Assembly: GCF_902652985.1 (NCBI RefSeq)
Contig: NC_047020.1
Location: 25,792,001 to 25,856,000 of the forward strand
Direction of reading: 5' to 3'
DNA length: 64,000 bases
Source: Pecten maximus
Taxonomy: Eukaryota
A program made the translations under genes and the position numbers. Positions 35,392-60,800 of the stretch are shown in pieces. The stretch's first letter is position 1. Every line of letters starts with the position of its first letter. The notes beneath the pieces are model-generated. The model was not told the origin of the DNA and did no database searches. It saw nothing but the letters and a program-made list of their open reading frames with translations.

Positions 35392-38300
35392 TCAAACTAT
35401 GAGAACGGAAACAGTTCTCTTTCGTCTATAAGATAACAGAAACCTGAACAAATCGACCACGTCAGACATTACGATGATGAGAATGGGCGTGCCAAGCATT
35501 AAAGCACCTGTGTATCCCATTATCTGTGACGATGTACGGTTGTCCTTGGCTGATATTTTCTTACGGATATGCATAGCCAGTGAACTTTTCTTTAGTACCA
35601 GTTCTCTTTTAAGTTCTTCCAATATCTCTTGCAGTTCTTCCCTTGTGATGTTGATATATTTTGGATTGGGAGATTTTGGACACATACATATTCCGGGGGG
35701 AACATTAGGACACTGTTCCGAATTGTTTATGGTAACAGCTGTCGTCGGAGGCAGAGTTATACATGAAGCTGTCGAAGCAGGATCTGGATGAAGATTAAAA
35801 ACAATATACAGAGAGATGCATGTAGAAAAACACTTAAGTCATTGACAGGAATTATGTTATACTGGAATTTGAATTTGCATAAAGATAAGAAATAATGACG
35901 AAAAGACGAAACCTACATTAAGTAAATAGAAATGAGTCAATGAAACTATTAATATAAACACGAATATGCAACATTATCAACTACATAATGTCATCTTTAT
36001 CTTTTAAAAATATCACAATTATTTGTGGCAAAATACTATAGATATAGCTAGTATGTTTTATTAAACTAAACATGTATAATTCCGATCACTGATTTAAGTA
36101 AACTGCTGCGTGGTGGTAGATACGTAAAACTCCCATCTGTCACCATTATAAAGCAATTCATATCAGATATGTATTGTTATCAGGTTATAAACATGCCATA
36201 ATGTATCATTATACTAATACAAACATGTTTTATAGACGACGTTGCAACAGATCAGCGTGTAACGTTTTATTGAATAACAAACTTTGAGTGGCCATATTTG
36301 ATATTGATTATGCTGTAGGTGTGTGTTTTGTGTTTCCCATGGGCAATCTCTCTCATGATTGGTAATAGTAAACAAATATGCCGTGTGAATGTACATATTT
36401 AAACTTTTAAAATACGGACACATTACAGTGACAGAACGTGACTTCTGGGTCAGCGTCCGGAAACTGTCATCGACTTGCATGTGAACACACCTAATATGTG
36501 CGCACACAAAAGATAAAATAAAGACATATTTGATTACATTTTCTATTGTTTAATTAGACACAAGTTAGATACAAGTAGTGTAATGTTTCTAATGAGAGAT
36601 TTCAAAAATTGTTGTAAGGTGTTAAAGATCGTTTCTTAGCATAGTCATCGATATCACCACAATATACACACGTGTGTTAATTACGTCCTAAAACTTTTGT
36701 TGAAATTCGTGGCCAATGGGCCTTAACCGTCATCTTACTTCCTTCAATTACCCTTGTAAGGTACATTTGTATATACTCAGTAGCAGTAGCTGTACTGACA
36801 ACAATTGTGCAATACTGTATGTTGTCCATGGCGACCAACTTTGCTTTTGACTAGCCCGAAAAATAACAGTACTATTTCAGGAGAATTTCAGCTAAGTAAC
36901 AGCTGAATCCAATGATACATGAAGAAATTCGAATTATGAAAACTTTAGAGAAGGCGCTGCGGACGACTATCGACGATACACATGGTATGTAGGTCTACCT
37001 GGCAAGCTGACCTTAAGAAAATGATGCTAAAATAAAAAGCATACAAATAATATCCGATCATGTTGAACCAGTTGTATTGGGCAATGTTTGATTGTTTTTG
37101 TACCATACATTACATAACATGGCTATATTACATCTAAATATGAGTTCATTAAACAGGACAGCCGCTGATACGCTTTATAAAGATGTGTTCTCGCTTATTT
37201 AAATGTAATTGAAATGTCGCGTATAGATTATATTGAATGCTTCCTATTTTTTCTGGATTTCCTACGTTATGAGCTTTCAGTTTTTGCAAAGTAATATACT
37301 TTAAGAGAAATGATACATACCACATACATACATTAGATGATTCTCTCGGGAAATTAACACCAATATCATACATTTTGTATACATATACAATGCTTCCCTA
37401 CGGGAACCTAAACACCAACATTCTATATACAGTTTTACAATGGAATCCCTACACATAATTCCCTTTTACGGTGATTCCCTAAGGGAATATACACCTGTAA
37501 ATTGATTCCCTGAGTGCACCTATATCTACATTGTAACTCCTCTATTTATTTATACAATTATTATCTCAGGTTACTTATACCTAACTTCTCTATTTATACA
37601 GTGAGTTCCTCAGGAAACTTACACTTAACTCCTCCAATAATACAGTGATTTCCTCAAAAAACCTACACCTTACTTTTCGAAACAGTAATTCCCCGAGGGA
37701 ATCTACACCTAACTAGTCCTCTTTTAATTCATATGGGTGATTTTCGTTGGTTACCTCCACATAACTCCTCTATTTATACAGTGATTCCCCAGATAACCTC
37801 CATCTAACTCCTCTATTTCTACAATGATATCCCCAGATAATCTACACATTACTCCTCTATTTCTACAGTGATATTCCAGATAATCTACACATAACTCCTT
37901 TATTTCTACAGTGATATCCCCAGATAACCTACACATAACTCCTCTATTTCTACAGTGATAGCCCCAGGTAACTTTCACATTACTCCTCTATTTCTACAGT
38001 GATATCCCCAGATAACCTACACATTACTCCTCTATTTCTACAGTGATATCCCCAGATAACCGACACATAACTCCTCTATTTCTACAGTGATATCCCCAGA
38101 TAACCTACACATTACTCCTCTATTTCTACAGTGATATCCCCAGATAACCTACATATCACTCCTCTATTTCTACAGTGATATCCCCAGATAATCTACACAT
38201 TACTCCTCTATTTCTACAGTGATATCCCCAGATAATCTACACATTACTCCTCTATTTCTACAGTGATATCCCCAGATAACCTACACATTACCCCTCTACT

Positions 38301-41300
38301 TCTACAGTGATATCCCCAGATAGCCTACATATCACTCCTCTATTTTTACAGTGATATCCCCAGATAACCTACATATCACTCCTCTATTTCTACAGTGATA
38401 TCCCCAGGTAACTTTCACATTACTCCTCTATTTCTACAGTGATATCCCCAGATAGCCTACACATTACTCCTCTATTTCTACAGTGATATTCCCAGATAGC
38501 CTACACATTACTCCTCTATTTCTACAGTGATATCCCCAGATAACCTACACATTACTCCTCTATTTCTACAGTGATATCCCCAGATAACCTACACATTACT
38601 CCTCTATTTCTACAGTGATATTCCCAGATAACCTACACATTACTCCTCTATTTCTACAGTGATATCCCCAGATAGCCTACATATCACTCCTCTATTTCTA
38701 CAGTGATATCCCCAGATAACCTACACATTACTCCTCTATTTCTACAGTGATATCCCCAGATAACCTACATATCACTCCTCTATTTCTACAGTTATATCCC
38801 CAGATAACCTACACATAACTCCTCTATTTCTACAGTGATATCCCCAGATAACCTACATATCACTCCTCTATTTCTACAGTGATATCCCCAGATAACCTAC
38901 ATATCACTCCTCTATTTCTACAGTGATATCCCCAGATAACCTACATATCACTCCTCTATTTCTACAGAGATATCCCCAGATAACCTACATATCACTCCTC
39001 TATTTCTACAGTGATATCCCCAGATAACCTACACATTACTCCTCTATTTCTACAGTGATATCCCCAGATAACCTACACATTACTCCTCTATTTCTACAGT
39101 GATATCCCCAGATAACCTACATATCACTCCTCTATTTCTACAGTGATATCCCCAGATAACCTACACATTACTCCTCTATTTCTACAGTGATATCCCCAGA
39201 TAACCTACACATTACTCCTCTATTTCTACAGTGATATCCCCAGATAACCTACACATTACTCCTCTATTTCTACAGTGATATCCCCAGATAACCTACACAT
39301 TACTCCTCTATTTCTACAGTGATATCCCCAGATAACCTACACATTACTCCTCTATTTCTACAGTGATATTCCAGATAATCTACACATAACTCCTTTATTT
39401 CTACAGTGATATCCCCAGATAACCTACACATTACTCCTCTATTTCTACAGTGATATCCCCAGATAACCTACACATTACTCCTCTATTTCTACAGTGATAT
39501 TCCAGATAATCTACACATAACTCCTTTATTTCTACAGTGATATCCCCAGATAAGCTACACATTACTCCTCTATTTCTACAGTGATATCCCCAGATAACCT
39601 ACACATTACCCCTCTACTTCTACAGTGATATCCCCAGATAGCCTACACATTACTCCTCTATTTCTACAGTGATATTCCCAGATAGCCTACACATTACTCC
39701 TCTATTTCTACAGTGATATCCCCAGATAACCTACACATTACTCCTCTATTTCTACAGTGATATTCCCAGATAACCTACACATTACTCCTCTATTTCTACA
39801 GTGATATCCCCAGATAGCCTACATATCACTCCTCTATTTCTACAGTGATATCCCCAGATAACCTACATATCACTCCTCTATTTCTACAGTTATATCCCCA
39901 GATAACCTACACATAACTCCTCTATTTCTACAGTGATATCCCCAGATAACCTACACATTACTCCTCTATTTCTACAGTGATATCCCCAGATAACCTACAC
40001 ATTACTCCTCTATTTCTACAGTGATATCCCCAGATAACCTACATATCACTCCTCTATTTCTACAGTGATATCCCCAGATAACCTACACATAACTCCTCTA
40101 TTTCTACAGTGATATCCCCAGATAACCTACATATCACTCCTCTATTTCTACAGTGATATCCCCAGATAACCTACATATCACTCCTCTATTTCTACAGTGA
40201 TATCCCCAGATAACCTACACATTACTCCTCTATTTCTACAGTGATATCCCCAGATAACCTACACATTACTCCTCTATTTCTACAGTGATATTCCAGATAA
40301 CCTACACATTACTCCTCTATTTCTACAGTGATATCCCCAGATAACCTACACATTACTCCTCTATTTCTACAGTGATATCCCCAGATAACCTACACATAAC
40401 TCCTCTATTTCTACAGTGATATCCCCAGATAACCTACACATAACTCCTCTATTTCTACAGTGATATCCCCAGATAACCTACACATAACTCCTCTATTTCT
40501 ACAGTGATATCCCCAGATAACCTACATATCACTCCTCTATTTCTACAGTGATATCCCCAGATAACCTACACATTACTCCTCTATTTCTACAGTGATATCC
40601 CCAGATAACCTACACATTACTCCTCTATTTCTACAGTGATATCCCCAGATAATCTACATATCACTCCTCTATTTCTACAGTGATATCCCCAGATAACCTA
40701 CATATCACTCCTCTATTTCTACAGTGATATCCCCAGATAACCTACACATAACTCCTCTATTTCTACAGTGATATCCCAAGATAATCTACATATCACTCCT
40801 CTATTTCTACAGTGATATCCCCAGATAACCTACATATCACTCCTCTATTTCTACAGTGATATCCCCAGATAACCTACACATAACTCCTCTATTTCTACAG
40901 TGATATCCCCAGATAACCTACACATTACTCCTCTATTTCTACAGTGATATCCCCAGATAACCTACATATCACTCCTCTATTTCTACAGTGATATCCCCAG
41001 ATAACCTACATATCACTCCTCTATTTCTACAGTGATATCCCCAGATAACCTACACATTACTCCTCTATTTCTACAGTGATATCCCCAGATAACCTACACA
41101 TTACTCCTCTATTTCTACAGTGATATCCCCAGATAATCTACACATAACTCCTTTATTTCTACAGTGATATCCCCAGATAACCTACACATTACTCCTCTAT
41201 TTCTACAGTGATATCCCCAGATAACCTACACATTACTCCTCTATTTCTACAGTGATATTCCAGATAATCTACACATAACTCCTTTATTTCTACAGTGATA

Positions 41301-44241
41301 TCCCCAGATAACCTACACATTACCCCTCTACTTCTACAGTGATATCCCCAGATAACCTACACATTACTCCTCTATTTCTACAGTGATATCCCCAGATAAC
41401 CTACATATCACTCCTCTATTTCTACAGTGATATCCCCAGATAACCTACACATTACTCCTCTATTTCTACAGTGATATCCCCAGATAACCTACACATTACT
41501 CCTCTATTTCTACAGTGATATCCCCAGATAACCTACATATCACTCCTCTATTTCTACAGTGATATCCCCAGATAACTTTCACATAACTCCTCTATTTCTA
41601 CAGAGATATCCCCAGATAACTTTCACATTACTCCTCTATTTCTACAGTGATATCCCCAGATAACCTACACATTACTCCTCTATTTCTACAATGATATCCC
41701 CAGATAACCTACACATTACTCCTCTATTTCTACAGTGATATCCCCAGATAACCTACATATCACTCCTCTATTTCTACAATGATATCCCCAGATAACCTAC
41801 ACATTACTCCTCTATTTCTACAGTGATATCCCCAGATAACCTACATATCACTCCTCTATTTCTACAGTGATATCCCCAGATAACCTACATATCACTCTTC
41901 TATTTCTACAGTGATATCCCCAGATAACCTACACATTACTCCTCTATTTCTACAGTGATATCCCCAGATAACCTACACATAACTTCTCTATTTCAACAAC
42001 ACTTAAACGTTTTACGAATTGATAATGATATTGGTAGCCCTCTCATTTGTTTTTGAAAGTCGTGCATAAGGATTTATATTCTAAGACATGTTATAGGATA
42101 TTCATATTTATTTTTAATGATCTAATGTCTCCCATTTGTTTTTGGCTCGATTCGTCTATTTCTATAGATAATATTATGCATACTCTATAAACCCTTCTTG
42201 GTATTCTGAATATATCAGACTGTATTAAAACCCAAAAACATCATCGATCATGAGAAACCATACCCCTAATAAAGGTGATATCACTGATGCCTTAACCCCT
42301 CTCGAAATGGGTGCCACTAATGAGATGGTAAAAACTTCATTTAGGGGAGCATCGATGAGAATCCCCCTCCACCATGCATGCATGCGAAGGCGGTGTCACA
42401 AGGAGGTGCCAGGGAGGTGGTAAGGGTTATATAGGAAGGGAGGTGGCCCAGAACGCTTGACTTGTGTACTACTATGTTAAGTTATATTTCCCAAATATGT
42501 GATACATCTTATTCCTTTATCATGAATTCATTAGCATTAATTTGAATACAGCTTACCAAAAGGACATGATGTATTATATCCAGTCACACATGTGTTAACT
42601 TGATGAGTCCATTCTGTACCTGGAGGACAAGGCTGCTGAATCCAGCCTCCATGGACGCAATGGTAATACGTTGAACTGTCGCATGGGTTGTATTTATAAA
42701 CATACCCGATGCATTTATCTGCAACAAAAGACAATAGATTTGAGACTAGAAACAATCCAGGCGAAAATTACATAAAAAGTAGTTTTATTTGATTAAAGAC
42801 TATAATTACTACCAATCGTTATAGTATTCACCATGACAACGCAGCACAATGTCGTAAGATAACAACACAATACCATGTTTTATTATAAGGAATATACATG
42901 TCATGACAATAGATGTACCCAATAGTCAACAATAGGCCATTTGTTTAAAACGTGTAACTGCAATACACATTATGTTTTTGTTTAATAATCGTGTGTTTCA
43001 GACAATATGAAAACGTGTTTAATAGTTCACGCTTCATATGCTAATACAGGTCACAGTGCAGAATGTGAAAACCGTACCATTGTTATCTATGCAACTAAAG
43101 GCCGCCGAAATGAATGTACCAAGTGTGAGAATCCAATACATGTCCTGAAACAAATGAATAACATTCAAAGTATAATTACAATTTTGTATAAAGAACAACA
43201 ACTCAAATTCACACGTTGTTTTTTTTGTGAGTAAGGGTGTGTGACAGACAAAAAGCCACTTCCGAAATGGGACCGTCGCGCTTTTTCCAGCACTTGTGAC
43301 ATTACAAACGATTTTTTGTTTGTTTTACTTAATTTTGTTCCTTTATTTATATTTTATTTTCGTTTTTAATGCGTCGTAGACCGTTCTGAGCGGTTATATT
43401 TGTCATTTGCGTTCGACGCTGTCGGACGATAAACCTTCCACAACTAAGGGAGATGGAAGGCTAACCATAGGACCGCTGGAGGCATGCTTCAGCTTAATGT
43501 GTGGTGAGTGAAGGCTGTGGTGGAGCAGTTGGCGGACGATACACGTTCAGAAAATAATGTGTCGTCATATCTTGACGAATTATTGACACAAACATAATCT
43601 ATATTAGGTTAATCTAAGTGATCCCCTCGTTTTTCAAACTCCTGAAAGAGCAAATGTAGACAATATTTCTTTCGATATCTTAGCTAATATTAAGGTCGAT
43701 AGACCGATATGTTTTTGTCATCCCGGACCTATATGCAGACAACGATGTCTTGTCAAAGGACATAACCACGAAAGTGCAGACCGGTCCGATTCTAAGTTGC
43801 CCGAGAAACACAAACCGCCCTGGGTAGGTGAAATGTCGAACCACACACTCTGGAACTTCGTCTGAGGTTAAGGGGCCGGCACTCTAGCGCGGCCCTGAAG
43901 CATGGTGTAGCACGACTTGGGTTTTCTGATTGTTTGTCAAGCATAGCATTTAAGCATTCTATTAACAATTAACAAATTCGAAATGCATTTGTTTCCAGTT
44001 AAATACCATATCCATTTAATCCGTTGATGTTCACTCGTAAATATAGTGCTCGTGAAATATAAAATAATGTTGAATCAATTAGCTATTCATTATAAGTTTG
44101 ATTAAATACTTTGTAATGCAATCAAACTAAGGATAACACAAAATACAACTCTTAACTCATCAAAACAAGCAGCAATGTTATAATACTCACCATGGCCATC
44201 AGTACCCTCCAGTGAAGTATGTTAATACTCACCATGGCCAT
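35392..44241 (-). CDS. Membrane-anchored chitin-binding (CBM14/peritrophin-A-like) protein, paralogue A (short stalk)
   Basis: Exons 44241-44233 (ATG GCC ATG; duplicate copy at 44199-44191), 43144-43078 (signal peptide DMYWILTLGTFISAAFSC), 42718-42557 (6-Cys domain, YYHCVHGGWIQQPCPPGTEW), 35783-35392 (stalk, CMC, SAKDNRTSS, TM, stop). Phases 0,1,1 are consistent; about 209 aa. Confidence 0.82.
37750..41995. repeat. 44-bp satellite array, about 96 copies, in intron 3 of paralogue A
   Basis: Unit CAGTGATATCCCCAGATAACCTACACATTACTCCTCTATTTCTA (period confirmed: 660 bp = 15 units); degenerate copies extend left to about 37390. Confidence 0.98.
43690..43900 (-). mobile_element. SINE relic
   Basis: Reverse complement gives tRNA-like TAGAGTGCCGG...GGTTCGAC followed by TGTCCTTTGACAAGACA, as in the other SINE bodies. 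Confidence 0.45.
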
Positions 44242-44274
44242 CACTACCCTCCAGTGAAGTATGTGGCGGGAATG

Positions 44275-44288
44275 TCAGCGTTATACTC
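44275..44288 (-). promoter_or_regulatory. TATA-like core promoter motif of paralogue A
   Basis: GAGTATAACGCTGA on the - strand about 40 nt upstream of the first donor; 13/14 identical to the motif upstream of paralogue B. Confidence 0.45.
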
Positions 44289-45478
44289 ATACATATTCCT
44301 GGTACTTACCAATTTAATCAATTCGCTCATGTTACAGAGAAAAATTATTGTTATACACCAGGCTTGGCCTATTATTCAAATGCAGGTAACAATAAATTAT
44401 GTATAGTGCTGTGCTATGTTTCCTGATACTGTGTTACGCAATATTTATGATCGAGCACATGATAGTTCTGCTCACGTTTTCATATAACGGTATTGATGTT
44501 AATCAATCAATGGATGTAATAAATCGTAAAATTTTATAAAATGCTTTATCTAAAACGTATTCCGATTGATAGGAATATCATCATAGAATGATACACGTTC
44601 GTTGTATACACATATCTGCTGTGTTTAGGTTGACAAGTAACCATGAAAATAAATACAGCGAATTATGTTGAAATACTATCATATTATTTGTTCACGAGGT
44701 ACCCACACATATTTGGACTTCAATGTGTTGTTGAAACATATGTAGCTTAACACAAGGAAGGAGAGTACCCACGGATATGACTTATTGTACATTTATTCTT
44801 TAGAATGAAAACAATGGCGACGGGCGATTTTTAATGAATACAATCCGAAAACGTGTCATTTTGCCTCCACTGTAATAAAACTCTCTTCAAATTTATGGCA
44901 AGTGCTTATCCCCCTCCCTTTTACAAATCAATTTGTTATTTGACATGTTACCTCCATGTTGTAGAGCTCTGTTTGCTGCATTGACTCATTCTAAACGCGT
45001 GTACCAAATAAAAACCAGCAATACAAATGTGTGGCGATAAATTGGCTCACTTTTTTAGGAGTGGCCGCAATTATTTTATTTTATTTTCATTCTTTTATGT
45101 TGATAATGATAATTGAAAAGATTTTGATTATTAATAGTATTTCTTTGAATTCTTTGTATGAATAACACCTTATACAGCAAAGGTGAGCGGAAGATAGATT
45201 AGTCCGCCAAAATGACAATATATAAATGATATATATTGTCATCCGAAACGTGTCATTTTAAGCTGAAGAAGTGTTTAAAAATGAACATAACAATTCTCTA
45301 CATCCGTGGTGATGATGATGAGTCATATACATCAAGCAGTATCAATACACAGCAGACATTTTTCATTAATACATCCTTCAATAATAACTTTTTGACAACA
45401 AATAATATATAAGTGTGAAAGGTGAAAGGCAGAAGAGCAAATTAAAATGATTTCAACTTTAAATAGCGGGAAGTAAAT

Positions 45479-45508
<30 letters not shown>
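45479..45508. repeat. Poly-G tract
   Basis: About 30 G. Confidence 0.95.
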
Positions 45509-45511
<3 letters not shown>

Positions 45512-46379
45512 GATCATACCCTTTAGCCACTTTTGAAATAAACCTTTATGCATATTTGTACAAATATCATTCCAATATACATGTATATAATGTATTTTAG
45601 ATTTGAATTAGATTTGACTTTATATGTATATCCTAGGTTGATAAGTCATATACTTGATCGGATGCATATCAAAAACAAAAATGCATGAAAAAAATGGAAG
45701 CCATACAGACAACCAGCATATGCTGATTATCAATTATTGTATTCTAGATTTTTGCCGTAAAACATGCATACATAATTTATCGACGATGCTAAATTCTGTA
45801 AATTAACCGTCGGTACATTGATTGTAATTGATATATATTGATTTTACTGGTGAAACGTGACATTTGTCTTCATTTTTCGGTTTACGTGGGCATATCACTA
45901 TCACGTGCTGACATATGTCACTCTAGAAAAAGGATATTCGGTTTGTTTGTTTATTTTTTATTTTTTATTTTTTTATTTTTTTATCTTTATTTTGATTTTT
46001 GATTTTTGTCAAGCTGAAAGTATTTTAGTGAACGACTTATCGCATCACCCTTTAGGTAAGGGCATGCTTTTAGTTTTCCTCACACAAATGAAAGCGCAAT
46101 AAGTATTTTCAAATACAAAAATAAGTACACCTTCGTTCTTTTTTTTTTTTTTTTTTGCTTCGCATCTTACTAAATATGTTATTTTAAGACGAAATATTAT
46201 ATGTAAAGAAATGATATTAATAATACAACATTAATATAGCGCACTATCTAATTTGTATTCACAATACATAAGTTAAACAATGTACAGAATATAAATAACC
46301 TATATCGACTAGAACATTTAGATAATACATGTGTACATGACGTCATCAAGAGACTCCAAAAAGCACATAAACAAGTGAG

Positions 46380-47030
46380 TTTTAGCCTCATTATTGACTT
46401 TGTCCAAGATAACAGATACTAAGCTGTTCCACAAAGTGGCTGCTACCTTTCCAAAGCACCGGTTACCTTTAGTCATGGTACGTGAGTTTGGAACGCGTAA
46501 CTAGGGTTCTGCTAGTAGTAGTAATACATGTAGTAGTGATCGTGACGGCTGGTAGAGAGTGACAAGTTCCTGTTAATACACCGGAGCTGTTCCATTTATT
46601 GCATTGTATGTGTACATCAAAATATTGTATTGTGACCTGAAGCGCATAGGTAGGCAATGCATTAAATAATGCACTGTCATGATGTACTTTCTCTTTCGAG
46701 TGCGGGAAACCAGGCGTGCTGCAATGTTCTGGACCCTCTACAAGCAACTAATCGATGAATCAGATACAACAAAAAGCAAAGCATTACCATAGGCTAATCG
46801 AGAATTAAGCCGCGAATGCACCAATGTCTTGCATGCAATAGTTGTCATGAACTGCCAGATACGCCCGATGTTTCTGATTTGGTAATAAAAGGAACTTGTG
46901 ATAGCGTTTACCTCTTTCTCCGTGTTCAAAACGTTATCATAATGTACATGTACATGTACACCAAGGTTCTTCACCACTTTCACTGCCTCAATAGTTTGGG
47001 CACCAACCATTAGCTGGAGACCTTTCGTGT
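46380..47030 (-). mobile_element. L2/CR1-group LINE 3' fragment (ORF2 C-terminus, degraded)
   Basis: Translation VKNLGV...VNAITSSFYYQIRNIGRIWQFMTTIACKTLVHSRLNSRLAYGNALL, typical of the post-RT region of L2/CR1 ORF2; stops and frameshifts present. Confidence 0.85.
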
Positions 47031-47199
47031 GTTGTCACTTACACTTCTTTTTAACATTGACGATCTAATGTTGATAGCAATTATTATGTCTGTTCTCGTT
47101 AATTATTCACATAATACAGTTTTACACATCACAAGAATATAAATTGAATGAAATGACATACTATAGGAATGGCTTCGAGGAAATACCACCCACCAGATA

Positions 47200-50100
47200 T
47201 CACAATGGGAAAACAACTCGAATTCGCCTGAACGCTAAAAAATACGTGAATAAATCAACCAAGTCAAACATTACAATGATGATAATGGGCGTGGTCAACA
47301 GAGTGGCCCCTGTGTATCCCATTATCTTTGACGTTATACGATTGTCTTTGGCTGACAGTTTCCGACGAATATGTGTCGCTAATAAAGTCTTGTTTAATAA
47401 CAGATCTTTTTTAATTGCTTTCACGATATTGGTCAATTCTTCCTTTGTGATGTTAGCATACTTCTGATGGACAGGTAGGCATGGACACATAGGTTTGGTG
47501 GTAAAAATAGAAAAATGTGAAGTAGTCACTAGGGCACTGTTTAGAGTAACGTCCGAAGAAATGTCTAGTGTAATGTCTCGTGAAGTGTCTGGGGTTATGT
47601 CTGGTGTAGTGTCGCGTAATATGTCAGGAGTAGTGTCTTGTGTAGTGTCTGCAGAAATGGTTCGATAAGTGTCTGGGGAAGTGTCTAGTGCAGTGCCGGA
47701 GGTGTTCATTGTAGTGTCTAAAGAAGTGTCTAGAGTAGCGTCTAGGGTGATGCCAAGAGTACTGTCTGGAGAATTATCTAGAGTATTGTAGGAAGAAGTG
47801 TCTAGATTATTGTCTGTAGAAGTCTCTAGAATAGTGTTCGGTGTAGTGTATATAGTAGTATCTGGAGATGTGTCTGAAGAAGTGTCCGGGGAAGTGTCAA
47901 TAGTAGTATCTGGAGATATGTCTGAAGTAGTGTCCGGGGAAGTGTCTATAGTAGTATCTGGAGATGTGTCTGAAGTAGTGCCCGGGGAAGTGTCTATAGT
48001 AGTATCTGGAGATGTGTCTGAAGTAGTGTCCGAGGAAGTGTCTATAGTAGTATCTGGAGATGTGTCTGAAGTAGTGCCCGGAGAAGTACTAGGAGCAACA
48101 TCTAGAGGAGTGTCTAAAGTAGGGAATTTAGTAGTTCGTAAAATATTGTATTGATAAGTGTATGGAGCAGTGGCTGGTGAAGTGTCTGGATAAGCATCTA
48201 GAGTAGTATGTCTTTTAACAGCCGACGTTGGTGGCGCAGCTCCAGGTGTAGTACTCGATGCAGAACCTGGATGAAAATTATAGGGATTGTTTTAATGAAA
48301 AATAAATAAATAAAAGCTTCATGTATTTACAAGGAAATCAGAAATACATAGAATATATAACATTGAGATTTATATAAATTGATGAAGTTTTGATAATATT
48401 TTAATAATTTTAACAATATATGTATATGTATAATCAGTGCAGCTAAGAAATAGCAATGTCAGTTTATGACATTTATTTATGTTTAAGTGTAGTTACAAAT
48501 ATATTTTCCACAAAACTATTACATAGTTATAGATATAAAATACAAATTAGAAATATATTTTTGAATGAGTCCAGTCCCTAACCTGAAGTTATAGCTATCT
48601 TCGTCACTACAAACAAAAAGCTCTGTATTATTCTAAGAACTGTTACCCGTATTGGAGAAGTATACTGCTAATTGATAGGTATTGCATTACAGGCATTATA
48701 TCATGTTTTCACATTTTTTTTTGCCATTTCGTCTTCGTGAATTGGATCACTTACAAGTCAATATCAATGTCCTTTATCTATATTCGAAGATTAATTGAAA
48801 AGTAAAAAGGAGCGAGTACTTCGAAATGAAAATGTATCTCTTCATAATTTAACAACTCGCTCATATTCAGTATAACATTCCTTCTCCCACACCTAAGATA
48901 TACATTACCCTACACGACTGTTAATTACCATAAGGACACGCCGTATTGAATGAAGATCCAGGAATAACACACGATAATATGCTTTGACTCCACTTAGTAC
49001 CTACAGGACATGGCTTGGTCAACCATTTGCCAGCACTGTTACATAGGAAAAAAGTCGAAAGATTGCTCGGGTTACATTTAAAATCACCAGCATCGCAAAC
49101 GCCTAAAAACAAAAAACAAAAACAAAAACTACTGATTGGGTAGTTAGAATAATCAACGTCCAATTTAACATTAATGATCGCAATATCATAAAGATAGTAT
49201 TTTCTCTAATGTAATTGGAAATATATGAAGTACCACCTGTAAAACATGACTCGGATTATTATTCCGATAGTTATTACAATAAACTTATTTTCGTCTCGTA
49301 AGTCTTTAGGAATTCACTTTCGTTTTATTATTTGAAAATGCACTTTTCTAACTTAAACCCAATGAGTTTAGGCGAGGAAGAGCTCAAGTATTGATGTTTT
49401 CTGCCCGTCCTCGTTTTATTATTTGAAAATGCAAGCTCAAAATTGATTCATATCTTAGAAGGTGACTTGCTAGAGATTTCCATCCAATGTATCCGTTGGG
49501 TGTCGTCGGTGAAGCAGAAACGTGCAACCTTCCGGAACAACTAGTCTTAATCCCCTTGTGGTCTTTAGTTTCTCTGCATAATTTATTCTTTTGATATTTT
49601 TTTCCCCGTTTCATCGAATAAGAGATTGAGCCACGATCCACTTTCATTGATTGACGACATACATAAACTATAACATACCAAGCCTATGACACTTATAAAT
49701 TATGGACCTATGGTGGAGTTAAAATGGCGTTATACCGACCGGGTCGAAGTCGCCCGATGTTATTTGCGAAAGGGTGGAATCGCACTATATTTATCTTGAT
49801 GACATGAAATTCACACTGGGGCATTATGACGTCTCAATGCGTATTAGGCCATAAACGCAATATTAAATCGATGTTTCTAAAAAAAGAAATAACAAGTCCA
49901 TGTCTTAAAATATTAATCCCCATATGACCATATTTGACAAATAAGATTTTAAAATGTCGGATCAAAGCTAATATAACGAATGCTGCAATGTACAATATAA
50001 GATGACACGGGCAGCCTAACAAGACAACCGATGATAACATACACAAACTTTGATGACGTCACACAATCCATGCTGTCTTTAAAACATGTTACGTATGGAT

Positions 50101-52211
50101 TTGTGCACATCAAGGCAATTGACGGAACAGTGACATTTAGCTAATTAAACCACCTACTTTGTATATTTGTATTGTTTGTTTGTTTGCTTGGAGTATCGCC
50201 CCGTCAACAGCCAGGATCATTTTGAAACGGGGTCAACTTTGTAGTAGTTGGTGACTACCTCATTTAACAACATACAGGAGGCCCGTCGCATGCCACTTAG
50301 GTAAAGTGAAGTGTCTTGCCCAATGATACAACCAGGACAGCACGAACCGGCCTGTTTCTCAACTTGAGAAACACTAACCACTTCAGATTAAGAGCGTCGA
50401 ACTACGAACCTCGGATCTTCGACACCAAGGTTACGTGGCCGTAAGCATCTTGTTATTTTTTTTATAGTAACATCCTGTAAATATCAATTATAGTACCACG
50501 TGTAGATAGAGAGTGTTTCTGGCAGTGATAAATACGTTGTGTTCAATACACATACTAAACCGTATACACAAGCCACGCCACATGATTTTGAGACATGGTA
50601 TAGGGATCAAACTTACTCGAGACTTTGCCTTGTGTCATCCAAATGCTTGTGCACAGGGTAAGAATCCAAAACAAGTCCTGAAACATACGGTTAAGATGCA
50701 TACCGTAATTGTTGAATGCTATTTATTAAATGAAAAGAGAGAGCATGCACTGCATTGAACTTTCAAACGATTGCAATATATATTTAAGTTTCAATACTTT
50801 TAAACAATATTTTGATGACTGATAATTATTCATTCTTTTATTATTACCTGAGCACAGAAAACCACACGGTTGTGTATATACAAATAAATGTACATTCTTA
50901 CTGAGATTGAGTTGTATATGCCTTTATATCACAGCAACGTAACCGGCTCAAAGCGGTTTAAAAATTGCCGTCTCAATCAAATTTTTTTTGTCGTAAAGAG
51001 GCAGTCGAATTAATCTCCCAGACAAGAGGAAACAGATTATCAATGAAAGTCAGTTTGAAAATTATTTAACAAACTTCTAGGGGTACCGACTACTTACCAC
51101 TAAAATATCCAAATTGTTCATGCTAACAAATTATATAATCACTGCAAATGCTGTTAAAAAAATTTAATCGGCATGTGCAATCTTGAAATTATGTGTTTCT
51201 GTCTCGATGGCACTTTCTGCTTATTAATTTATTATTATTCATTCTATAAAAGTGATATTTTTCACTAGTGAAAAAATATCACTTTTGCTGATTTGACCAA
51301 TCAAATTAATGATTAGAAAATACCAAAATAATTGACCAATCAGAAAGCCCGACATATGTCAGCACCTGGACAGGGGAAACTACTTTTTTTGTTTACAAAT
51401 TATCGCTGTAGGCCTAGTTAGCATACGGGGTAGGTTTTTCGTTGATAAAAAATTTAATAAACAGAATAATTTAACAGTGTCTTCAGTAATACCAAATATA
51501 TTTCACTCGTGTGGCTAATATTTTGATATTTTTCACTCGTGCTGTGCACTCGTGAAAAATATCAAAATATTAGCCCCACTAGTGAAATATATTTGGTACT
51601 ACTGAAGACACTGTTAGATATCCTCTATTTTTTGTGACGGAAAAAAAAACAAAAAAAAACGCTATGAATACGCCTCAAATGGTTGTACCAAAGAAACACA
51701 AGGCATCTTTAAGTACAGATTGACAGCTAGAAACGAAACATTATAGCAAACATGAATTAGACTGTATCATACAGCTGATTCGTCCTTCTAGGATTCGTCA
51801 GTGACACCAAAGGCCTAAAGTGTTGTTACCTAGGAGACAACTTAAAAATACAGAACTAAATGTAAAAGTCTAGATATGGAGGTGAAATGGTCACATAATT
51901 GATAACATTTCATAATTCTCAATATTGGGATATAAGGAATGAAGGAAATTTAACGTTTTTGCTTTTTTACTTTCAAATACATACATAGTTCATTACCACA
52001 ACATATTCATGGAACCTTTAGATATATATTATTAACGCCAATAAAATAAGATATTTAACTGAATTCAATTCTATTTAATTTGGAGGTGACCTTCCAAAAC
52101 GCGTCATGTAGTGCAGATTAAGAAATAAATGCGAATTATTTGTCAAACAATTGTATCTTAAGTAAATTGTCTATTTAAAGCATCACCTCATTAGAATGCT
52201 GTACTCACCAT
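47200..52211 (-). CDS. Membrane-anchored chitin-binding (CBM14-like) mucin-stalk protein, paralogue B
   Basis: Exons 52211-52209 (ATG|gtgagt), 50677-50617 (signal peptide DLFWILTLCTSIWMTQG), 49102-48929 (6-Cys domain, FFLCNSAGKWLTKPCPVGTKW), 48266-47200 (open frame checked by hand: DT(T/S)(P/S) repeats, CPC, SAKDNRITS, TM). About 434 aa. Confidence 0.85.
50174..50445 (-). mobile_element. tRNA-derived SINE, same family as 17174-17371
   Basis: Reverse complement shares GAGG.AGTCACCAACT...TTCAAAATGA.CCTG.CTGTTGA and the (CAAA)n tail. Confidence 0.7.
51241..51628 (+). mobile_element. Non-autonomous element with a terminal hairpin (CACTCGTG core, ATATCCTCTAT end)
   Basis: Hairpin about 51472-51616; related, internally deleted copy at 63296-63618. 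Confidence 0.72.
51764..51807 (-). ncRNA. Type I minimal hammerhead ribozyme-like motif, two core-adjacent substitutions
   Basis: Minus strand GTGTCA-CTGACGA-ATCCT-AGA-AGGAC-GAAT-CAGCTG-TA-TGATAC; 6-bp stem I, stem II, palindromic stem III. Confidence 0.55.
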
Positions 52212-52258
52212 TGCATCTGTCCCTTCCTAGATGTGATGTGTATTAGAAAGTCCAAGAA

Positions 52259-52272
52259 TCAGCCTTATACTC
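52259..52272 (-). promoter_or_regulatory. TATA-like core promoter motif of paralogue B
   Basis: GAGTATAAGGCTGA on the - strand about 50 nt upstream of ATG|GT; shared with paralogue A. Confidence 0.45.
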
Positions 52273-54860
52273 CTACTACCCAAGATGATTTAATCAACCT
52301 ACATTTAGATCATGTCACAGTACAACGTTGGGGTATACATAGGTTGACCCTCTTATTCAGTTTCTAAAAACAAAATGCATAAACTTTTCGATATTTTCCG
52401 ATACTTTGGCACATAAAACGATAAAATGTAATGGAGTAACATATATTCGTGCTCAGCTCAATCTCGAAGTGATGCAATCAAAAAGATGGCACAACCAGCT
52501 AAGCAGATCAATATGAAGCGATTGTATTTTGGAAAGCCTTCCATATGTTCTTCGCTTATTCGTCATTTTTTCTGAAATTCCATTATATGTATTCGTTTTT
52601 GCCCCCACTCGTTCACTGTTTTTGTTTAGTCAATTAATAATTAAGAATAGGCGCATGTTCCACCAAAAAAATGGAAGTTTTGCTTGACATAAACCAAATA
52701 ATGACGAAATTTTCATTCCTGATGTCATATATAATCTCCGTATACGTTAAAAGGAAAACACTTGGAAATAATTTTCATATAATGCTTCTTATTATTTTCG
52801 AAGATGTTGTCAACTCCATGAATTCCTCTGTATAAAAGTAATTAGCTTCGGATTTCTCGTCTTTATGATTGATGTACAAATCTGGAAATCAATTTCTAGC
52901 AATTTATTCTTCCAAGGTTTCCTGGCTCATCCTTTTGTAGTTTACATCTTATCGATTAAAGACGGAATCATGATGGGAAAACTTGTTTTCTAAAGAGAGT
53001 CGCCCTTTGTGTGCTGGGATTATCATCGTAATCTTCTTATTCAAGTAAGGTTGATTCCGTACGTCCAGTTTATTAGTTTTACTCATAAATTCAATGTTAT
53101 TACCTCAGTTCCACTAGAAACGTTGATATGCATGAGAAACCTTTCATTGCGTCCTATCTGTATCAGTTATTTTTACCCTACAAATCGGAGTTTAATTAAT
53201 TGAAATCAGCTTTGCAATTCGCATTTAATTCAGACATAAGCTTTTCAGCAATAGTTTGTGATATATATATACATGTGTTCATATCATTCTTATTGCATGA
53301 TAGGAATGTAAAACTAATAATGTTAATAATATCCACTTAATACTATTAAATAGGGTTTTTAAAAACCAATTCATCAATATATCGAAGTTATGTCTGGTTG
53401 AAAAATCTTTTGGATTTTCTTCATTCGATACGAATACTCCGATGTTATAGTAATGATGATAATACAGCGACTGTATTTGTTAAGTATTGGTTTAAAATTA
53501 GCACTGCAAATGTTAACTATTAACCTTTCAAACGATCAGAGGTACAATTTAGCAAGCACAAGTTATCTTAAATAGAGCAGTTTTCTCACATCCGATTGAA
53601 ACTCCCGTCTAAACAAACATTGTTCGAAGTAATGCTAAATGTTGACCAATCATAGGCTTCCGTTCAAATTACCATTACTAGTGCTTTTATACCCCACGAA
53701 ATTTGCTTGATGTTGTAGGACAACATTGTTTGATCCAATGTAAAACATGAATCATTGCACCACGCCAATCGATCAATGAATCCGATATAATTTCAATCAA
53801 TTAAAGTATTAGCAAAGCTTCGAGTGTAATATCATTTTTAATTAACCAACCAATTTTCTGTCACTAAAAATCTAAAAATATCAACAGCAGTAAAATATAA
53901 ATATTTACACATCACAAAATATATAAAGCTCATTTTTCTGTCCATGTATATTAAGCACATGAAGTAAATAGCGAAATAAACACGGTGCAGCTCTGACAAT
54001 ATATTGAGCGAGATGTGATACGTTAAAAAAAACTGCACATCACCTTTTGTTTTGTGTCACCTAAGAAGACTTCTATCATAATATGAGTCAAAGCTTTGGT
54101 ACTGCGCAAAACAATATTCACAGATATTTGAAATTGTTTTTAATGGATATGTTCAAGGCTGAAATATGAGAAATGCACATATCATCTCCTCGGTGACATA
54201 CATGGACATTGTGTTGATATCATTAACATGACTGTTTATTAATCCCTTTTACATTTCTAAAATTACCGATGAATGATAAATTATGGATTTTTAACTTCCT
54301 CGTTTACAGTGGATTTCTAAATTAAAGAATTCTTATGATCCTTGTTTCAATGCAGACTCGGCCCGTTATCCAGATAAGTCTTTGTCAAAACTTTCAAGTA
54401 CCATCTTTACTTTATTGTGATACTGTATAATGAAATGAATGTATGTCTTTTTATGAATTTACGAAGCTTTTGAACGAATTATGAACATGTGCTCCTTAAG
54501 ACTTCTCTCCTATCAAAAATTATTCACTTTCTTGATTATCATCCTTATTTTGATTCGACAAGATCGCCCAACAGACTATTGACATAGATACGTGAACAAC
54601 ATGTACCCCTCTCTTACGACTTTATTGAAGAACTTATCAGAAGAGGTAACATAGTCCATGCAAAAGCAATGATGTTCCTTGATATGAAGTAAGATGCGTT
54701 CGATGATTATAGATATGAAGTAAGACACAGTTGATGATCGTTGATATGAAGTTCGTCGATGAAACAAAAGACGCTTATTCTTCCGAAACACACGGTCCAA
54801 TACAATTTATATTCTTAGCATTTCTGTCACCGTTTTATCTGATTTGATAAAGTATTTCGT

Positions 54861-57800
54861 TTAAAATGTCAGTATTCTGGTCAGGTCAGCGACCAAAGCA
54901 AGAAGTAAGGGTAAAATGACAACCAATACAAATGCATAACCAATGGTCTGTGAAGACATGCGTGAGTCGTCAGCACATGCTTGCCTCCGACGTGTTGAAG
55001 ACAGTAATTTCGCATTCAAAATCAATCGGTTTCTCATATGACGCAGTAACATTTGAAATGACACATGGTTGGCGTTGAAATACCCCGTTCCTATGCAGTT
55101 ACATGAACACATATTTCTAATGTAAACTATGTCAGTATTGTTCGGTGTGGAAACGGTAACTGTAGATGACCTGTTATCAGATATCGCCGTTACTGTTGTT
55201 CCATGATCAGACGCGACTGTTGCTTCAGTGTCAAAGGTCGCTGTTGTTCCAGGGAGAGATGTGACTGTTGTTTCAGTGTCAAATGTCATTGTTGATCTAG
55301 GGTCAGATGTCACTGTTGCTTCAGTGTCAATGGTCGCTGTTGTTCCAGGGAGAGATGTGACTGTTGTTTCAGTGTCAAATGTCATTGTTGATCTAGGGTC
55401 AGATGTCACTGTTGATCCATGATCAGATGTCACTGTTGCTTCAGTGTCAAAGGTCGCTGTTGTTCCAGGGTCAGATTGCATTGTTGATTTAGTTTCAGAT
55501 GTCACTGTTGATCTAGGGTCAGAGGTCACTGTTGATCCAGTGTCAGATGTCACTGTTGATCCAGTGTCAGATGTCACTGTTGTTCCAGGGTCAGATGTCA
55601 CTGTTGATCCAGTGTCAAATGTCACGGTTGATCCAGGGTCATATGTCACGGTTGATCCAGGGTCATATGTCACGGTTGATCCAGGGTCAGATGTCACTGT
55701 TGATCCAGGGTCATATGTCACGGTTGATCCAGGGTCAGATGTCAATATTGATCCAGGGTAAGATGGCATTGTTGTTTCAGGTTCAGATGTCATTGTTGTT
55801 CCAGGTTCAGATGTCATTCTTGTTGTAGGGTCAGATGGCATTCTTGTTCCAGGGTCAGATGTCACTGTTGATTCCGTGTCCGATGTCTTTGTTGACTCAG
55901 TGTCAGATGTCACTGTTGATCCCGTGTTCGATGTCTTTGTTGACTCAGTGTCAGATGTCACTGTTGATCCCGTGTTCGATGTCTTTGTTGACTCAGTGTC
56001 AGATGATGCTATTTTTCCTGTCCCAGACATCGTTGTTGCTTCTGTAATATATGATACCGATCATATGCTATTTAATATTTTGAAGTGATTGCAATTATTT
56101 CATTTACTCAAGTTTTTCTTTTACACAATGTGTATTTATGGTATGAGTGTGTCCGGTTCAGTGTTCCATTTAACTATTGCCCAATATACAACAGATATAC
56201 ATATGTATATATGTAAATGAACTTGTATCCAAATTTGTATGATATATTCTTCTAATATTGCGTTGTAGAGATTACAAATTTACGAGTTATTCATCAAAAT
56301 GTAAAGCGCCAGTCTGATCGGTATAGAATAATATAGTCATATTACAAAAGGTAAATTATAGGCGTGTTTGAAATCTCACCGTTGGATCCATCCACGTCAC
56401 AAATTACATGTGAATCTGGAGGGACACAAGCGACTAGTGAGAGGTTAAAAATAAAACCAGGAGTACTGCATGTTCTTTCATATCTCACGCCATTGTTGCA
56501 CCTGTAGAATTTATGTGGATCACTGTCATGGCATTCATAGGTGCCTTCAGTACATTCTTCTTCGCCTGTGCCATAAAATATGACTATTTCAAATACATTT
56601 ATCGGCAAAATTGTATAATTTATAGGATAAATTTGCTATAACATTTTTTTACTGTCACGACGTAGGTTTTTCAAAATGGAATTGTATGGAAATGGATACA
56701 CCCGTGTTGTTGACGTTCCGAGTGACACCAACATATCCTGTATCAGTGAAATTAAACGCGTGAGTCTTAGCCCTACGTTGTTGAAATAAGATGTTGCTAC
56801 CGTTTCATTAAAATGATTACGATTACGAACCATTCGTTGTACATTTGTTATGTTTTGTTTTGATGATACATACAAGACTACCGATACCACTGCATATACT
56901 GCATATACATAAATATATATGTAATACATATCGAGAATCACGAGAGCGGGACGTGGTCCGTTTTGGTTCGCCATGATCAATGCAAATCTTCCTTCCGTTT
57001 AGTCTATTTTATCATCAAATTTTATTTCGTTCGACTCCAACCCAAGATTAATCGACCTTTCCATGATGACACCCTTCCCCAATCCAGTCATGCCAAAGTT
57101 GTTTCCCGGTAAATTCACAAAACGTGCTCAGGTTGATGAACTTGAGCGAACGTAGTAAGAGAAGTCCGTGGTCAAAGGCTAGAGGTCAACCAATCAGAAT
57201 TATTGGAGGTCAGAAATTACCAATCGGAGCCTTTAAAAGTGGTTACCTACCGCGACGTGTTGGCAATAACACTCTTTCACGAATTTTATCACGTGCCTTA
57301 TCAGTTGTAAAACAAGCGAGAGAGAATCTAGGCATATGTTTTCGCTCCCGACTTCATAGAATACAGAAGAAAAAGAAAAATAAACATTTCAGGAAGGAAA
57401 ACCTTTTTTTTCTTACTTGAATCAGATTGGCAAGCTACGTAGGAAGGGAAATCTTCCCGGTTGCATGCAGAAATTGAGGTATCCCATACCAAGCCTCCCG
57501 CGCACGATCTACTAAACCAAGCACCATTGAGGCACACGAAATATTTCTGAGGATCATCCACATCACACCGGAAATCGATTCCACTACAACCATTGGCTAA
57601 AACAAAATATACAGACAAAATACATCTCAATAGAATGTTAACTCAGTTATGCTGAAATATCAATACAACGGTTTTATGGAATATGAGTTTGATTACAGAT
57701 TAGATATAATAGCGATAAAACCAAACAATGAAATATCAACAAAACCAGACAATGAGATATCAATAAAATCATACAATGGGATATCAATAAAACAATTCAA

Positions 57801-60800
57801 TAAAACCATACATTGGGATGTGAATAAAACCATACAATGAAATATCAATAAAACTATACATTGGGATATCAATAAAACCATGCAATGAAATATCAAAGAA
57901 ACCATACAATGGAATATATTAAAAAAAAAAACATAAAATAGAATATTAATGAAACCACACAATGAAATATCAATAAAACCATACATTGGGATATTAATAA
58001 AAACATTCAATAAAAAGAAATACAATAGAATATAAAAAAAACCCCATACATTTGGATATCAATAAAACCATATAATTAAATATTACTGAAACAATGAAAT
58101 ATCGATAAGACCTTACAATGTAATGTCAATAAAACCTTACAATGAAACATCAATAAGACCATGAAATGGGAGGGACCAACCAACCAATTGTTTTCCCATA
58201 GACTTTAGTGTTAACGTTTTGGAGTACATTATCTTTTTTTTTGTATTTCATTCAAATTCTTGAATTCAATATGACAATTACTGTTTATAACAAAAGTTTA
58301 GGGTCTGATATAACACATAATCAAAAAAAAAGTTGGGTCCTTCAGCTCAAATTTTCTCCAGGGTAGCCATTTTGAAAAGGGGTGAATTTCGCACTAAAAA
58401 TTCTCAAAAATCTTAATTGTTTACCTGTTAATTATTATTACCTGAACTTTTGGGAAAATTCAATCGGACTTACGATATTTATATCGACATTTCTTATTGA
58501 TAGTTACCTATCAGGCTACATATCTATTTTCTCACTTCATAACATACTGGCCAATCAGTGGCTGCCAGACATTTTATCCTTGGCTCAACTTTCTATACAC
58601 AGGGGCTGTTTCAAAAATATTTTTTTTTCAATTGGTTGGTTGTTCCCTATAAATGAAACCATACAATAGAATATCAATAAAACCATACAATGAAATATAA
58701 ATGAAACCATACAATGGAATTTGGAAAAATAAACAAGCAATGGAATATAAATGAAACCACGCAATGAAATACAAACAAGAAATATCTTTAAAAAGATAAA
58801 CGGCATAGTTTTAATGCTGGCGGTTATAATGTTAGACTGCTGGTGAAATAAATTAACGAACTAAATTAAATGCGTTTCAGCACGGATAACAAAATTATAT
58901 CAGTTTGAATCATTTTTAGTGATAATAAGACTGCATTTGAATCAGGAACATAATTTTATTGATTCAGCTTGCATTCAATCTTAACCTTTTTTCGTTTTTA
59001 ATTGCATATCTGCATTTTGCATTTAGCGCTACATTGACCAATCACATACTTCATCTTGACCAGTAACGCCACCTGTCGCGTCATATCCGGGACCAAGAGA
59101 ATATTATACGGCTATGCTTAAACATACTGGAACCTCTAGATTGGCAGTGGCTGAGTCAGTAGATTGCCCAAAGGACAATAAAGTGTCCATGCTTTCTCAC
59201 AGTGACAAGTGTGCCCGTGTGTTTACCGGGCTCAAAAATCCTATGGGTCAGTGAGACATTGTTGACGACTATTTCAGTGCTGGTGAGGTGATCAGGAAAC
59301 GGTTTGTTTGGAAGATGATTAATTGCTTACTGTCAGCGTAGAGCATCTGAGGAGATCAAGTTGCCTGAAGACGTGGCGGAGGGAGGAGGCAATATCACAG
59401 CAGTTGTTGCTATGACAGTTACCTTGTCGTATGATAGAATATGAGTATTCCATGGTGTCGACTGGATGGTTGGTTGGTTTTGGCGATGCTGTGTGTATGA
59501 CATTCTGGGTATCCTAAATGTATCATCCAATGACTGTTTTGGTGTAGTGAACGGTCTCTGCCTTCTCGAGACCGTCCTCAAGATGTTTGGACGGTGTTCC
59601 GATGTATGATTGGTGTTGCACCAAGTCAGATAGTCGGAAAGTTACCTGACTCCTTCTGGAATCGAATGTTTTTGCGTGGTGCCACTGTTTACTATGGTGT
59701 AGGGATCGATGATGGAACATCGGATTGACGGAGAGCATAGTTTCTTCTGCTGAATGAGGGTCAGTGTCCTGTCGGTCGTTCTCGTATAGATAGGGACTGG
59801 TGTCGACTTCACAGGGGGCCTGCCCTACAGGTAGGGCGTAAGAATTGTACCTGCTGCCCCCATTGCATGATCGTAAGAGGCGACTAAACTTGGGATCTTA
59901 TCTTTTCTCTTCTTTCTTAACAACTTTCTTCTTCCTAATGTCTCCCTTGACAATGCCTCACTTTTGGCCTTTAGTTGAGCGTTCGCCCCTGTGAGGCACC
60001 CATAATGTTGATATCGTTTTGCCAGTGCTGGTCATGGTCCTATGGTGAATCGGGGAGAAACACTCCTGCTGGGGAAAGTTGACGGATGGTCTGCATTCCT
60101 TCAGAGGACTAGTTATTCGATGGATGGTTTCCCGTGCTGTGCGGCTACATGGCTACATGTCGGTTATGGGCCGACTGTTCGGGGACGCCATCCGAGGTTC
60201 GGCGATATGCTCAGTTGGCTCCATCGTTGCTGACATGGGTCAACGCTCTGCTCAGTTCGTGAGCGGCCGTTGAGTTCCTACTACGAGAGAGGTTGATACA
60301 TTTTTTAAGTTTTTCATGCAATGACATTGGGGTTGAACTTATTGTTACGATCCAACTGCAGATGTTGGTGCTTATAGCGTATTCCATTAAGACGGGGAGG
60401 TGTGTTGTGAATGTACGTTACGAGCTGACTTCTCTAAGCGAACGTGTTTATGTCACCTCCTCCCGAATGTGATGGTCGGCCGTGCGTGACTACAATCGTC
60501 GTAGTCTACACCTGGTCAAGCTTGTGCACGGATGTATTGACGTACCTCACTAGCGTCATCGCAGACTACACCTGCCATTGTCGGCAATATAGATATTGAG
60601 TATATAGCATTGCATACAATGAAATATCAATAAGACCATTCAATTAAATATCAATAAAACCATACAATGGGTATCAAGAAAACAATACAATGGAATATAA
60701 AGAAAATCATACAAAGTGATATCAATAAAACCATGAAATGGAAAATCAATACATTTTCGTAGTTGAAAACGATTAAACTCTATATCATGGAAAATGATTG

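Follow-up and report, generated by a model that had tools for sequence, protein, structure and literature searches.

A probable exon-shuffled anchoring and assembly cassette at the C-terminus of three chitin-binding-domain genes of Pecten maximus and of other molluscan proteins

Three genes in a 64,000-nt stretch of the Pecten maximus genome (the window: NCBI RefSeq assembly GCF_902652985.1, contig NC_047020.1, positions 25,792,001 to 25,856,000) end in the same short module, and the locus raises the question of what this shared ending does. The genes, A, B and C, are arranged head-to-tail on the minus strand. Each has one or two exons matching CBM_14 (chitin-binding peritrophin-A), followed by a last exon in which a linker or a Ser/Thr-rich tandem-repeat stalk precedes the module. 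A first-pass annotation had described three homologous segments here and proposed a portable cassette for anchoring or processing. The segments were recovered on the minus strand where it had placed them, together with all the strings that it quoted. In a three-way alignment over about 95 residues, the identity was 59% between A and B and 28% between A and C, and 16 columns were invariant. The analysis showed that the module is a phylum-wide, unnamed terminal-exon cassette, which anchors varied ectodomains as type I proteins with almost no cytoplasmic tail. Furthermore, we consider it reasonably likely that it is a mollusc-wide, exon-shuffled C-terminal cassette that serves assembly as well as anchoring.

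Restriction of the module to this locus can be dismissed decisively. Searched against this assembly (918 Mb, 3,983 contigs), a profile of the three copies gave 273 candidates, of which at least 150 were significant. The copies were spread over 18 of the 19 large contigs and frequently formed tandem clusters; an internal stop was absent from 142 of the 150. A transposon-borne open reading frame (ORF) was rejected as the cause of the high copy number: the copies are mutually only 25–50% identical and stand behind ordinary, differing ectodomain exons. A second profile, made from 26 other genome copies, was searched against 1.84 billion public cluster representatives and matched 2,754 protein clusters at E ≤ 1e-3, with 1,892 at E ≤ 1e-10. 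The similarity of A, B and C is far beyond chance, as the number of clusters that a profile from 26 other copies reached at the stricter threshold indicates. Among the best 150 matches, all 30 named ones were molluscan and came from three classes, namely bivalves (scallops, oysters, mussels, a pearl oyster, a unionid and Mactra), gastropods (Physella, Bulinus and Littorina) and a chiton (Liolophura). The public records from Pecten maximus matched loci of this genome at 100%. In addition, a word-index protein search with a 49-sequence alignment returned 15 short molluscan proteins under a length filter, while the same kind of search with the gene B module returned no match. The neighbours in the ESM Atlas were molluscan clusters only, either unnamed or named after the ectodomain. 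Seven of the 150 best public models (P0001, P0002, P0003, P0006, P0009, P0030 and P0100) contained a second module, and both modules had a membrane helix. This is topologically odd, and these models are most likely tandem genes fused by automatic annotation.

The first-pass annotation could not assign the module to a named domain, and our searches agreed with it. In Pfam, the three window proteins and the 26 genome copies gave scattered sub-threshold matches, none of which was common to more than three members. The best match of the profile among all PDB sequences had E = 0.29. With an AlphaFold2 (AF2) model of the module, Foldseek found no fold match beyond generic long helices, and the exhaustive structural search with VIA-align reached a best Z of 5.3, again for generic long helices. 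A description of the module was not found in the literature, in a search that was limited and is not proof of absence. The module thus seems to represent a molluscan domain family that has not been described. A parallel in molluscs is known from snails, where polymorphic single-pass receptor genes form clusters (PTC1) and some of them share a TMEM154-like membrane-spanning domain (PMC10875847; PMC7494358). The likeness lies in a shared membrane-spanning module on diverse, clustered, receptor-like genes. However, TMEM154 did not occur in the Pfam results for 26 modules and 65 full-length members.

The portability of the cassette was tabulated from its position and its partners, by the profile search that the first-pass annotation had proposed. 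The module was C-terminal in the 150 best public matches, with a median of 11 residues after it. Many unrelated ectodomains stood upstream, of at least 12 types. Among 65 members with at least 150 residues upstream, Lectin_C occurred in 10, IgGFc_binding in 9 and Ephrin_rec_like in 4; EGF, TSP_1, SUEL lectin, F5/8-C, WSC, V-set Ig and PLAT were also seen, and many members had a Ser/Thr/Pro stalk only. Within Pecten maximus, the partners were CBM_14, Lectin_C, SUEL, TSP_1 and a Methyltransf_FA-type domain. The ectodomains are mostly of glycan-binding or adhesive types, and in the window they are CBM14. The last exon with the module followed a phase-1 intron in all six mappable annotated genes of this species. 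The CBM14 exon of gene A is of phase 1-1, and the splice sites inferred for B and C are all of phase 1. Phase 1 is the class typical of shuffled extracellular domain exons, and the phase-1 terminal exon, read from gene structure, fits exon shuffling. Through phase-1 entry, joining any 1-1 ectodomain exon to the module exon would be simple. In this respect the cassette proposal of the first-pass annotation was borne out.

The single terminal exon encodes, in order, a variable Ser/Thr/Pro stalk, C-x-C-x-C, an N-glycosylation sequon, an amphipathic helix, a juxtamembrane motif, a hydrophobic core, an Asp and a short basic tail. With such an exon, an ectodomain that is otherwise secreted would become a type I surface protein on a glycosylated stalk. 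The layout of the window genes is that of membrane-tethered mucins, with a signal peptide (at the N-terminus of the public model P0007), 24-bp coding repeats (in B and C) and one hydrophobic core. Podoplanin, the CD43/endomucin type and the MUC1-type SEA-TM proteins likewise combine a signal peptide, a Ser/Thr/Pro tandem-repeat stalk, one membrane helix and a very short basic tail. However, there was no sequence similarity to them; a single weak Podoplanin match (E = 0.09) was obtained in one of 26 members, and no SEA domain is present here. Moreover, the conserved part in the present family is the membrane-proximal stretch of about 90 residues, which is common to many different ectodomains.

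Conservation was measured on 194 modules, or 153 after removal of pairs more than 70% identical. The cysteines at positions 8, 10 and 12 (C8, C10 and C12) were conserved in 94, 96 and 89%, respectively, and the N-x-T sequon after them in 51 and 69%. The first-pass annotation had described a CxC motif; this holds for A and B, whereas the family consensus is C-x-C-x-C, as in C. The extracellular helix has hydrophobic positions 25, 29, 32, 36 and 43 at spacings of 3–4, with L36 at 97% and a conserved Asn/Asp at 39. In the juxtamembrane motif, the values were 94% for S44, 98% for R48, 85% for K/R49, 97% for S52, 97% for D55, 99% for R57, 94% for S59 and 98% for A/S60. The hydrophobic core occupies positions 63–81 (19 residues), and D82 follows directly. 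Over about 190 sequences, G64 and D82 were conserved in 100% and G67 in 91%. The basic triplet, A-x-D-x-R, G-Y, mid-membrane Pro and Asp, which had been called invariant, are so in the three window copies; across the 194 members, the third basic residue (K/R at position 50, 57%), the Tyr (Tyr65, 36%) and the Pro (15%) are not conserved. The AF2 model (mean predicted local distance difference test score 82.6) has helices at 22–37 and 44–53 and one long helix at 58–99.

The simplest alternative to an assembly role is a plain membrane anchor, in which the module would be a tether only and its conservation would come from common descent, recent tandem duplication, gene conversion and generic needs of membrane insertion and glycosylation. 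The occurrence of copies in tandem clusters is as this explanation expects. In one such cluster (L004, L006, L007, L009 and L011; contig C8, 39.5–39.8 Mb), the stalk beside the module had a far higher synonymous divergence (dS) than the module itself, as in L004/L006 with 0.90 and 0.04, respectively. This pattern suggests either gene conversion of the module, as this explanation supposes, or poor alignment of the repetitive stalk. However, chiton, gastropod and bivalve members that are only 25–40% identical overall retain the same residues, and G64 and D82 are invariant. In diverged paralogue pairs, the ratio of nonsynonymous to synonymous divergence (dN/dS) was 0.18–0.40 for the module and 0.43–1.0 for the stalks; the module kept a dN/dS of 0.2–0.4 where dS was 0.2–0.8. 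Furthermore, the acidic residue is kept where the positive-inside rule favours Lys/Arg, which generic anchors are not known to do. A plain anchor was accordingly judged quite improbable.

The second alternative concerns the juxtamembrane Arg residues, which could mark a protease site 6–15 residues outside the membrane. The ectodomain would then be set free, into mucus, shell matrix or haemolymph for instance, and the stub could later be cleaved within the membrane, which the helix-breaking Gly residues would permit. R48 and R57 (98–99% conserved) and K/R49 do lie just outside the membrane core, where sheddases usually cut; G64 and G67 are at the outer end of the membrane helix, and the tail is minimal. 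In addition, about a third of the members contain R-K-L-[IV]-S, which is similar to motifs of the site-1-protease type. The first-pass annotation had drawn an analogy with the polybasic cleavage site of ZP-domain proteins, in which basic residues likewise stand close upstream of a C-terminal membrane helix and the tail is short. This analogy was not supported. R-x-[KR]-R was absent from A, B, C and the family consensus; only R48 of the triplet is invariant family-wide, and no ZP domain stood upstream in the window genes, which have CBM_14 exons, or in the 65 members. A furin/ZP-type site was rejected on the family consensus, where the residue next to the dibasic pair (position 50) is Lys in 48% of members and Leu in 35%, with no Arg at P4. 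Moreover, a whole face of the membrane helix is conserved as far as the cytosolic Asp, more than a sheddase site requires. The cleavage idea was thus weakened, and we regard shedding or processing, including the later cleavage of the stub, as rather unlikely.

The third alternative concerns the cytosolic end. The tail is very short, as had been noted, but not absent: in the window copies, the frames run on past the Asp for the lengths given in Table 1. In the window copies, the first eight or so residues past the Asp are amphipathic-hydrophobic and the following ones basic. In the family, the stretch after D82 is likewise amphipathic (hydrophobic at 83, 86, 87 and 90; p = 0.013) and is followed by Lys/Arg. 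A splice donor directly after the Asp, adding cytoplasmic exons, was considered and rejected. The codon there varies and the next eight or so residues are alignable, so there is no room for a conserved donor; the frame itself is conserved over these residues, P0007 ends at the ORF stop, and a contig of the public run X7 is unbroken past the stop of gene B. The Asp and the Leu four residues on could act as an acidic-dileucine-like sorting motif, or the membrane helix could direct apical or endosomal sorting. D82 at 100%, L86 at 56%, an aliphatic residue at position 87 in about 57% and the amphipathic stretch are in line with such a signal. However, [DE]xxxL[LI] was found in a minority only (Leu/Ile at position 87 in 28%), the Asp abuts the hydrophobic core, and the rest of the tail is not conserved. 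Judged from characterised motifs, an acidic dileucine directly at the core is too close for adaptor binding. The acidic dileucine was therefore rejected as a family feature, and a sorting signal in general seems highly unlikely.

The pattern of conservation points instead to an assembly interface. Conservation at positions 61–92 had a period of 3.6 residues (permutation p = 0.002), and the conserved face of the membrane helix consists of G64, G67, L71, I78, D82 and L86. Basic residues are usual at the cytosolic membrane edge, where D82 is acidic. An odd number of cysteines by a heptad-like helix, a charged juxtamembrane motif and a one-sided membrane helix that ends in an acidic residue exceed the needs of a passive anchor, and for this reason we infer that the cassette is more than one. 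The Cys motif beside a hydrophobic stripe of 3–4 spacing would give disulfide-locked self-association. The extracellular Arg/Asp/Arg motif and the single conserved face would form a helix–helix interface, which may serve self-assembly, a common partner chain or both. Such a partner chain would supply signalling or trafficking beyond the reach of the near-absent tail. The disulfide oligomers and the partner recruitment through the Asp, both proposed in the first-pass annotation, would each fit the conservation pattern. A similar arrangement of close-spaced Cys beside a 3–4-spaced amphipathic helix is found in matrilin, COMP, thrombospondin and the C-x-x-C of the IgG hinge type. Cys-flanked coiled coils elsewhere are disulfide-locked parallel oligomers. 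The module differs from them in that its helix has only about 2.5 heptads and there is no sequence relationship.

Several points weigh against the assembly reading. The periodicity of the extracellular helix alone was not significant (p = 0.11–0.16), and A and B lack the third Cys of the motif. In classical receptor–adaptor pairs the charged residue is mid-membrane, whereas the Asp here is at the cytosolic edge of the hydrophobic core. Gene conversion, where it acted, would inflate the apparent conservation among close paralogues, and the taxonomic range rests on the best 150 of the 2,754 clusters. The complex prediction for two copies of module residues 1–60, the extracellular part only, gave a score of 0.01, which is neither support nor counter-evidence for binding.

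A bolder extension is that the cassette might be the docking unit of a mollusc-specific multi-chain receptor system, in which hundreds of ectodomains per genome, whether chitin-binding, lectin-like or adhesive, couple to one or a few partner chains. This extension, drawn by analogy, is doubtful. The coupling would run through the juxtamembrane Arg/Asp/Arg, the Gly-x-x-Gly face and the boundary Asp. With DAP12, FcR-gamma, CD3-zeta and the charged-helix receptors, many ectodomains share one assembly principle. The module resembles these units in an extracellular Cys near the membrane region, a charged residue at the helix, tails too short to signal by themselves and many ectodomains. It differs from them in that its Asp is at the cytosolic boundary, its Cys motif is about 50 residues from the membrane, and it has no immunoreceptor tyrosine-based activation motif, no sequence similarity and no known partner. 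If the system were real, it would be functionally analogous to DAP12/FcR-gamma-coupled receptors and would explain signalling by tail-less pattern-recognition receptors of molluscs.

The features of the three genes are listed in Table 1. Gene A was confirmed by the public model P0007 (205 residues), which matched with 100% identity over three exons and ended at the same stop as the ORF. Genes B and C were analysed exon by exon. Compared with the Pfam cut-off of 22.1 bits for CBM_14, the exon of A and both exons of C were above it (P0007, 23.8 bits) and that of B was just below (19.9 bits). Gene A has only a short linker, in contrast to the repeat stalks of B and C.

Table 1. Exons and module parts of genes A, B and C (window positions)
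Feature	Positions	Strand	Evidence
A exon 1: start codon and signal peptide, 21 codons + 1 base, phase-1 donor	43078..43141	-	exact mapping of public model P0007
A CBM14 (peritrophin-A) exon, phase 1-1	42557..42718	-	Pfam CBM_14 E=1e-6; P0007 residues 22-75, 100% identical; splice sites
A last exon: 25-residue linker, module, stop 35392-35394; phase-1 acceptor	35392..35783	-	P0007 residues 76-205, 100% identical
A Cys motif, C-x-C (third family-consensus Cys absent)	35674..35688	-	hmmalign to family profile
A extracellular amphipathic helix	35578..35643	-	
A juxtamembrane motif S44..R48..S52..D55.R57.S59	35527..35577	-	
A membrane core, 19 hydrophobic residues + invariant Asp (35461-35463)	35461..35520	-	
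A tail, 22 residues, amphipathic/basic	35395..35460	-	
B candidate exon 1 (weak): Met + hydrophobic stretch, phase-1 GT	52496..52544	-	inference only
B CBM14-like exon, inferred phase 1-1	48929..49102	-	Pfam CBM_14 E=8e-4, under curated cut-off; splice sites inferred
B last exon: Ser/Thr/Pro/Asp-rich 8-residue-repeat stalk, module, stop 47200-47202; inferred phase-1 acceptor	47200..48266	-	
B Cys motif, C-P-C	47473..47487	-	
B extracellular amphipathic helix	47380..47445	-	AF2 model helix 22-37
B juxtamembrane motif	47329..47379	-	
B membrane core + invariant Asp (47263-47265)	47263..47322	-	
B tail, 20 residues	47203..47262	-	
C first CBM14 exon, inferred phase 1-1	57417..57596	-	Pfam CBM_14 E=1e-7
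C second CBM14 exon, inferred phase 1-1	56380..56565	-	Pfam CBM_14 E=3e-6
C last exon: 24-bp-repeat Ser/Thr stalk, module, stop 54861-54863; inferred phase-1 acceptor	54861..56041	-	
C Cys motif, full C-x-C-x-C	55095..55109	-	
C extracellular helix	55002..55067	-	
C juxtamembrane motif, Cys replacing S52 (as in 3% of family)	54951..55001	-	
C membrane core + invariant Asp (54885-54887)	54885..54944	-	
C tail, 7 residues	54864..54884	-	

In gene A, the 6.8-kb intron that separates the CBM14 exon from the last exon is largely filled by a 44-bp satellite (37753–41998; 96.6 copies, 94% identity, GC skew about −0.63), which is non-coding because its unit has stop codons on the gene strand. The first intron of gene B contains a high-copy element (51168–51943), for which contigs of runs X1–X3 had a summed word depth of about 24,000 and many internal joints. 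Its core (51478–51609) has a hairpin-like fold, and matches to miRNA precursors were sub-threshold (58 bits against a gathering score of 140). The element looks like a repeat of the miniature inverted-repeat transposable element type. The X7 contig (1,622 nt) was unbroken over 46900–47928, spanning the gene B module and stop codon and continuing for at least 300 nt into the 3' flank, and left the gene B intron beyond 48064 uncovered. It looks like mRNA, although the run is only guessed to be RNA and transcript ends cannot be read from such contigs. A 98-codon open frame without Pfam match (46741–47034, minus strand), in the flank 3' of gene B, lies under the same contig as the module; it could belong to a long 3' UTR or be an embedded repeat. 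Upstream of gene C, 24/48-bp tandem repeats (57700–58800) read as hydrophobic pseudo-ORFs in minus-strand translation. Candidates for the first exon of gene C fall in this hydrophobic-coding repeat, and the exon was therefore not placeable.

Two further features were observed on the plus strand. Near-identical ORF segments at 9468–9815 and 10196–10552, about 730 bp apart, share a Cys-containing stretch of about 70 residues and had no Pfam match at E ≤ 0.01; they are possibly duplicated exons of another secreted-protein gene. A 243-codon open frame at 13145–13876 consists wholly of a repeat of about 13 residues (29% GC, positive GC skew) and is probably a minisatellite rather than a gene.

The lectin-like and adhesive surface repertoires of molluscs are huge and poorly understood, and many of their members are recorded as "uncharacterized" or misnamed after the ectodomain. 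Matches to the module carry names such as phospholipase A2 receptor-like, SCUBE1, SVEP1 and fibulin-5-like. One profile of the module of about 90 residues gives a simple handle for an inventory of these proteins, and it flags gene models in which tandem genes have been merged. The cassette also shows how new receptors originate, by phase-1 domain exons joined to one terminal exon. Furthermore, about ten invariant residues are now named, which can be mutated to probe assembly, partner recruitment or shedding. The finding also has a bearing on how single-pass receptors with nearly no tail could work in the immunity, mucus and shell biology of molluscs.

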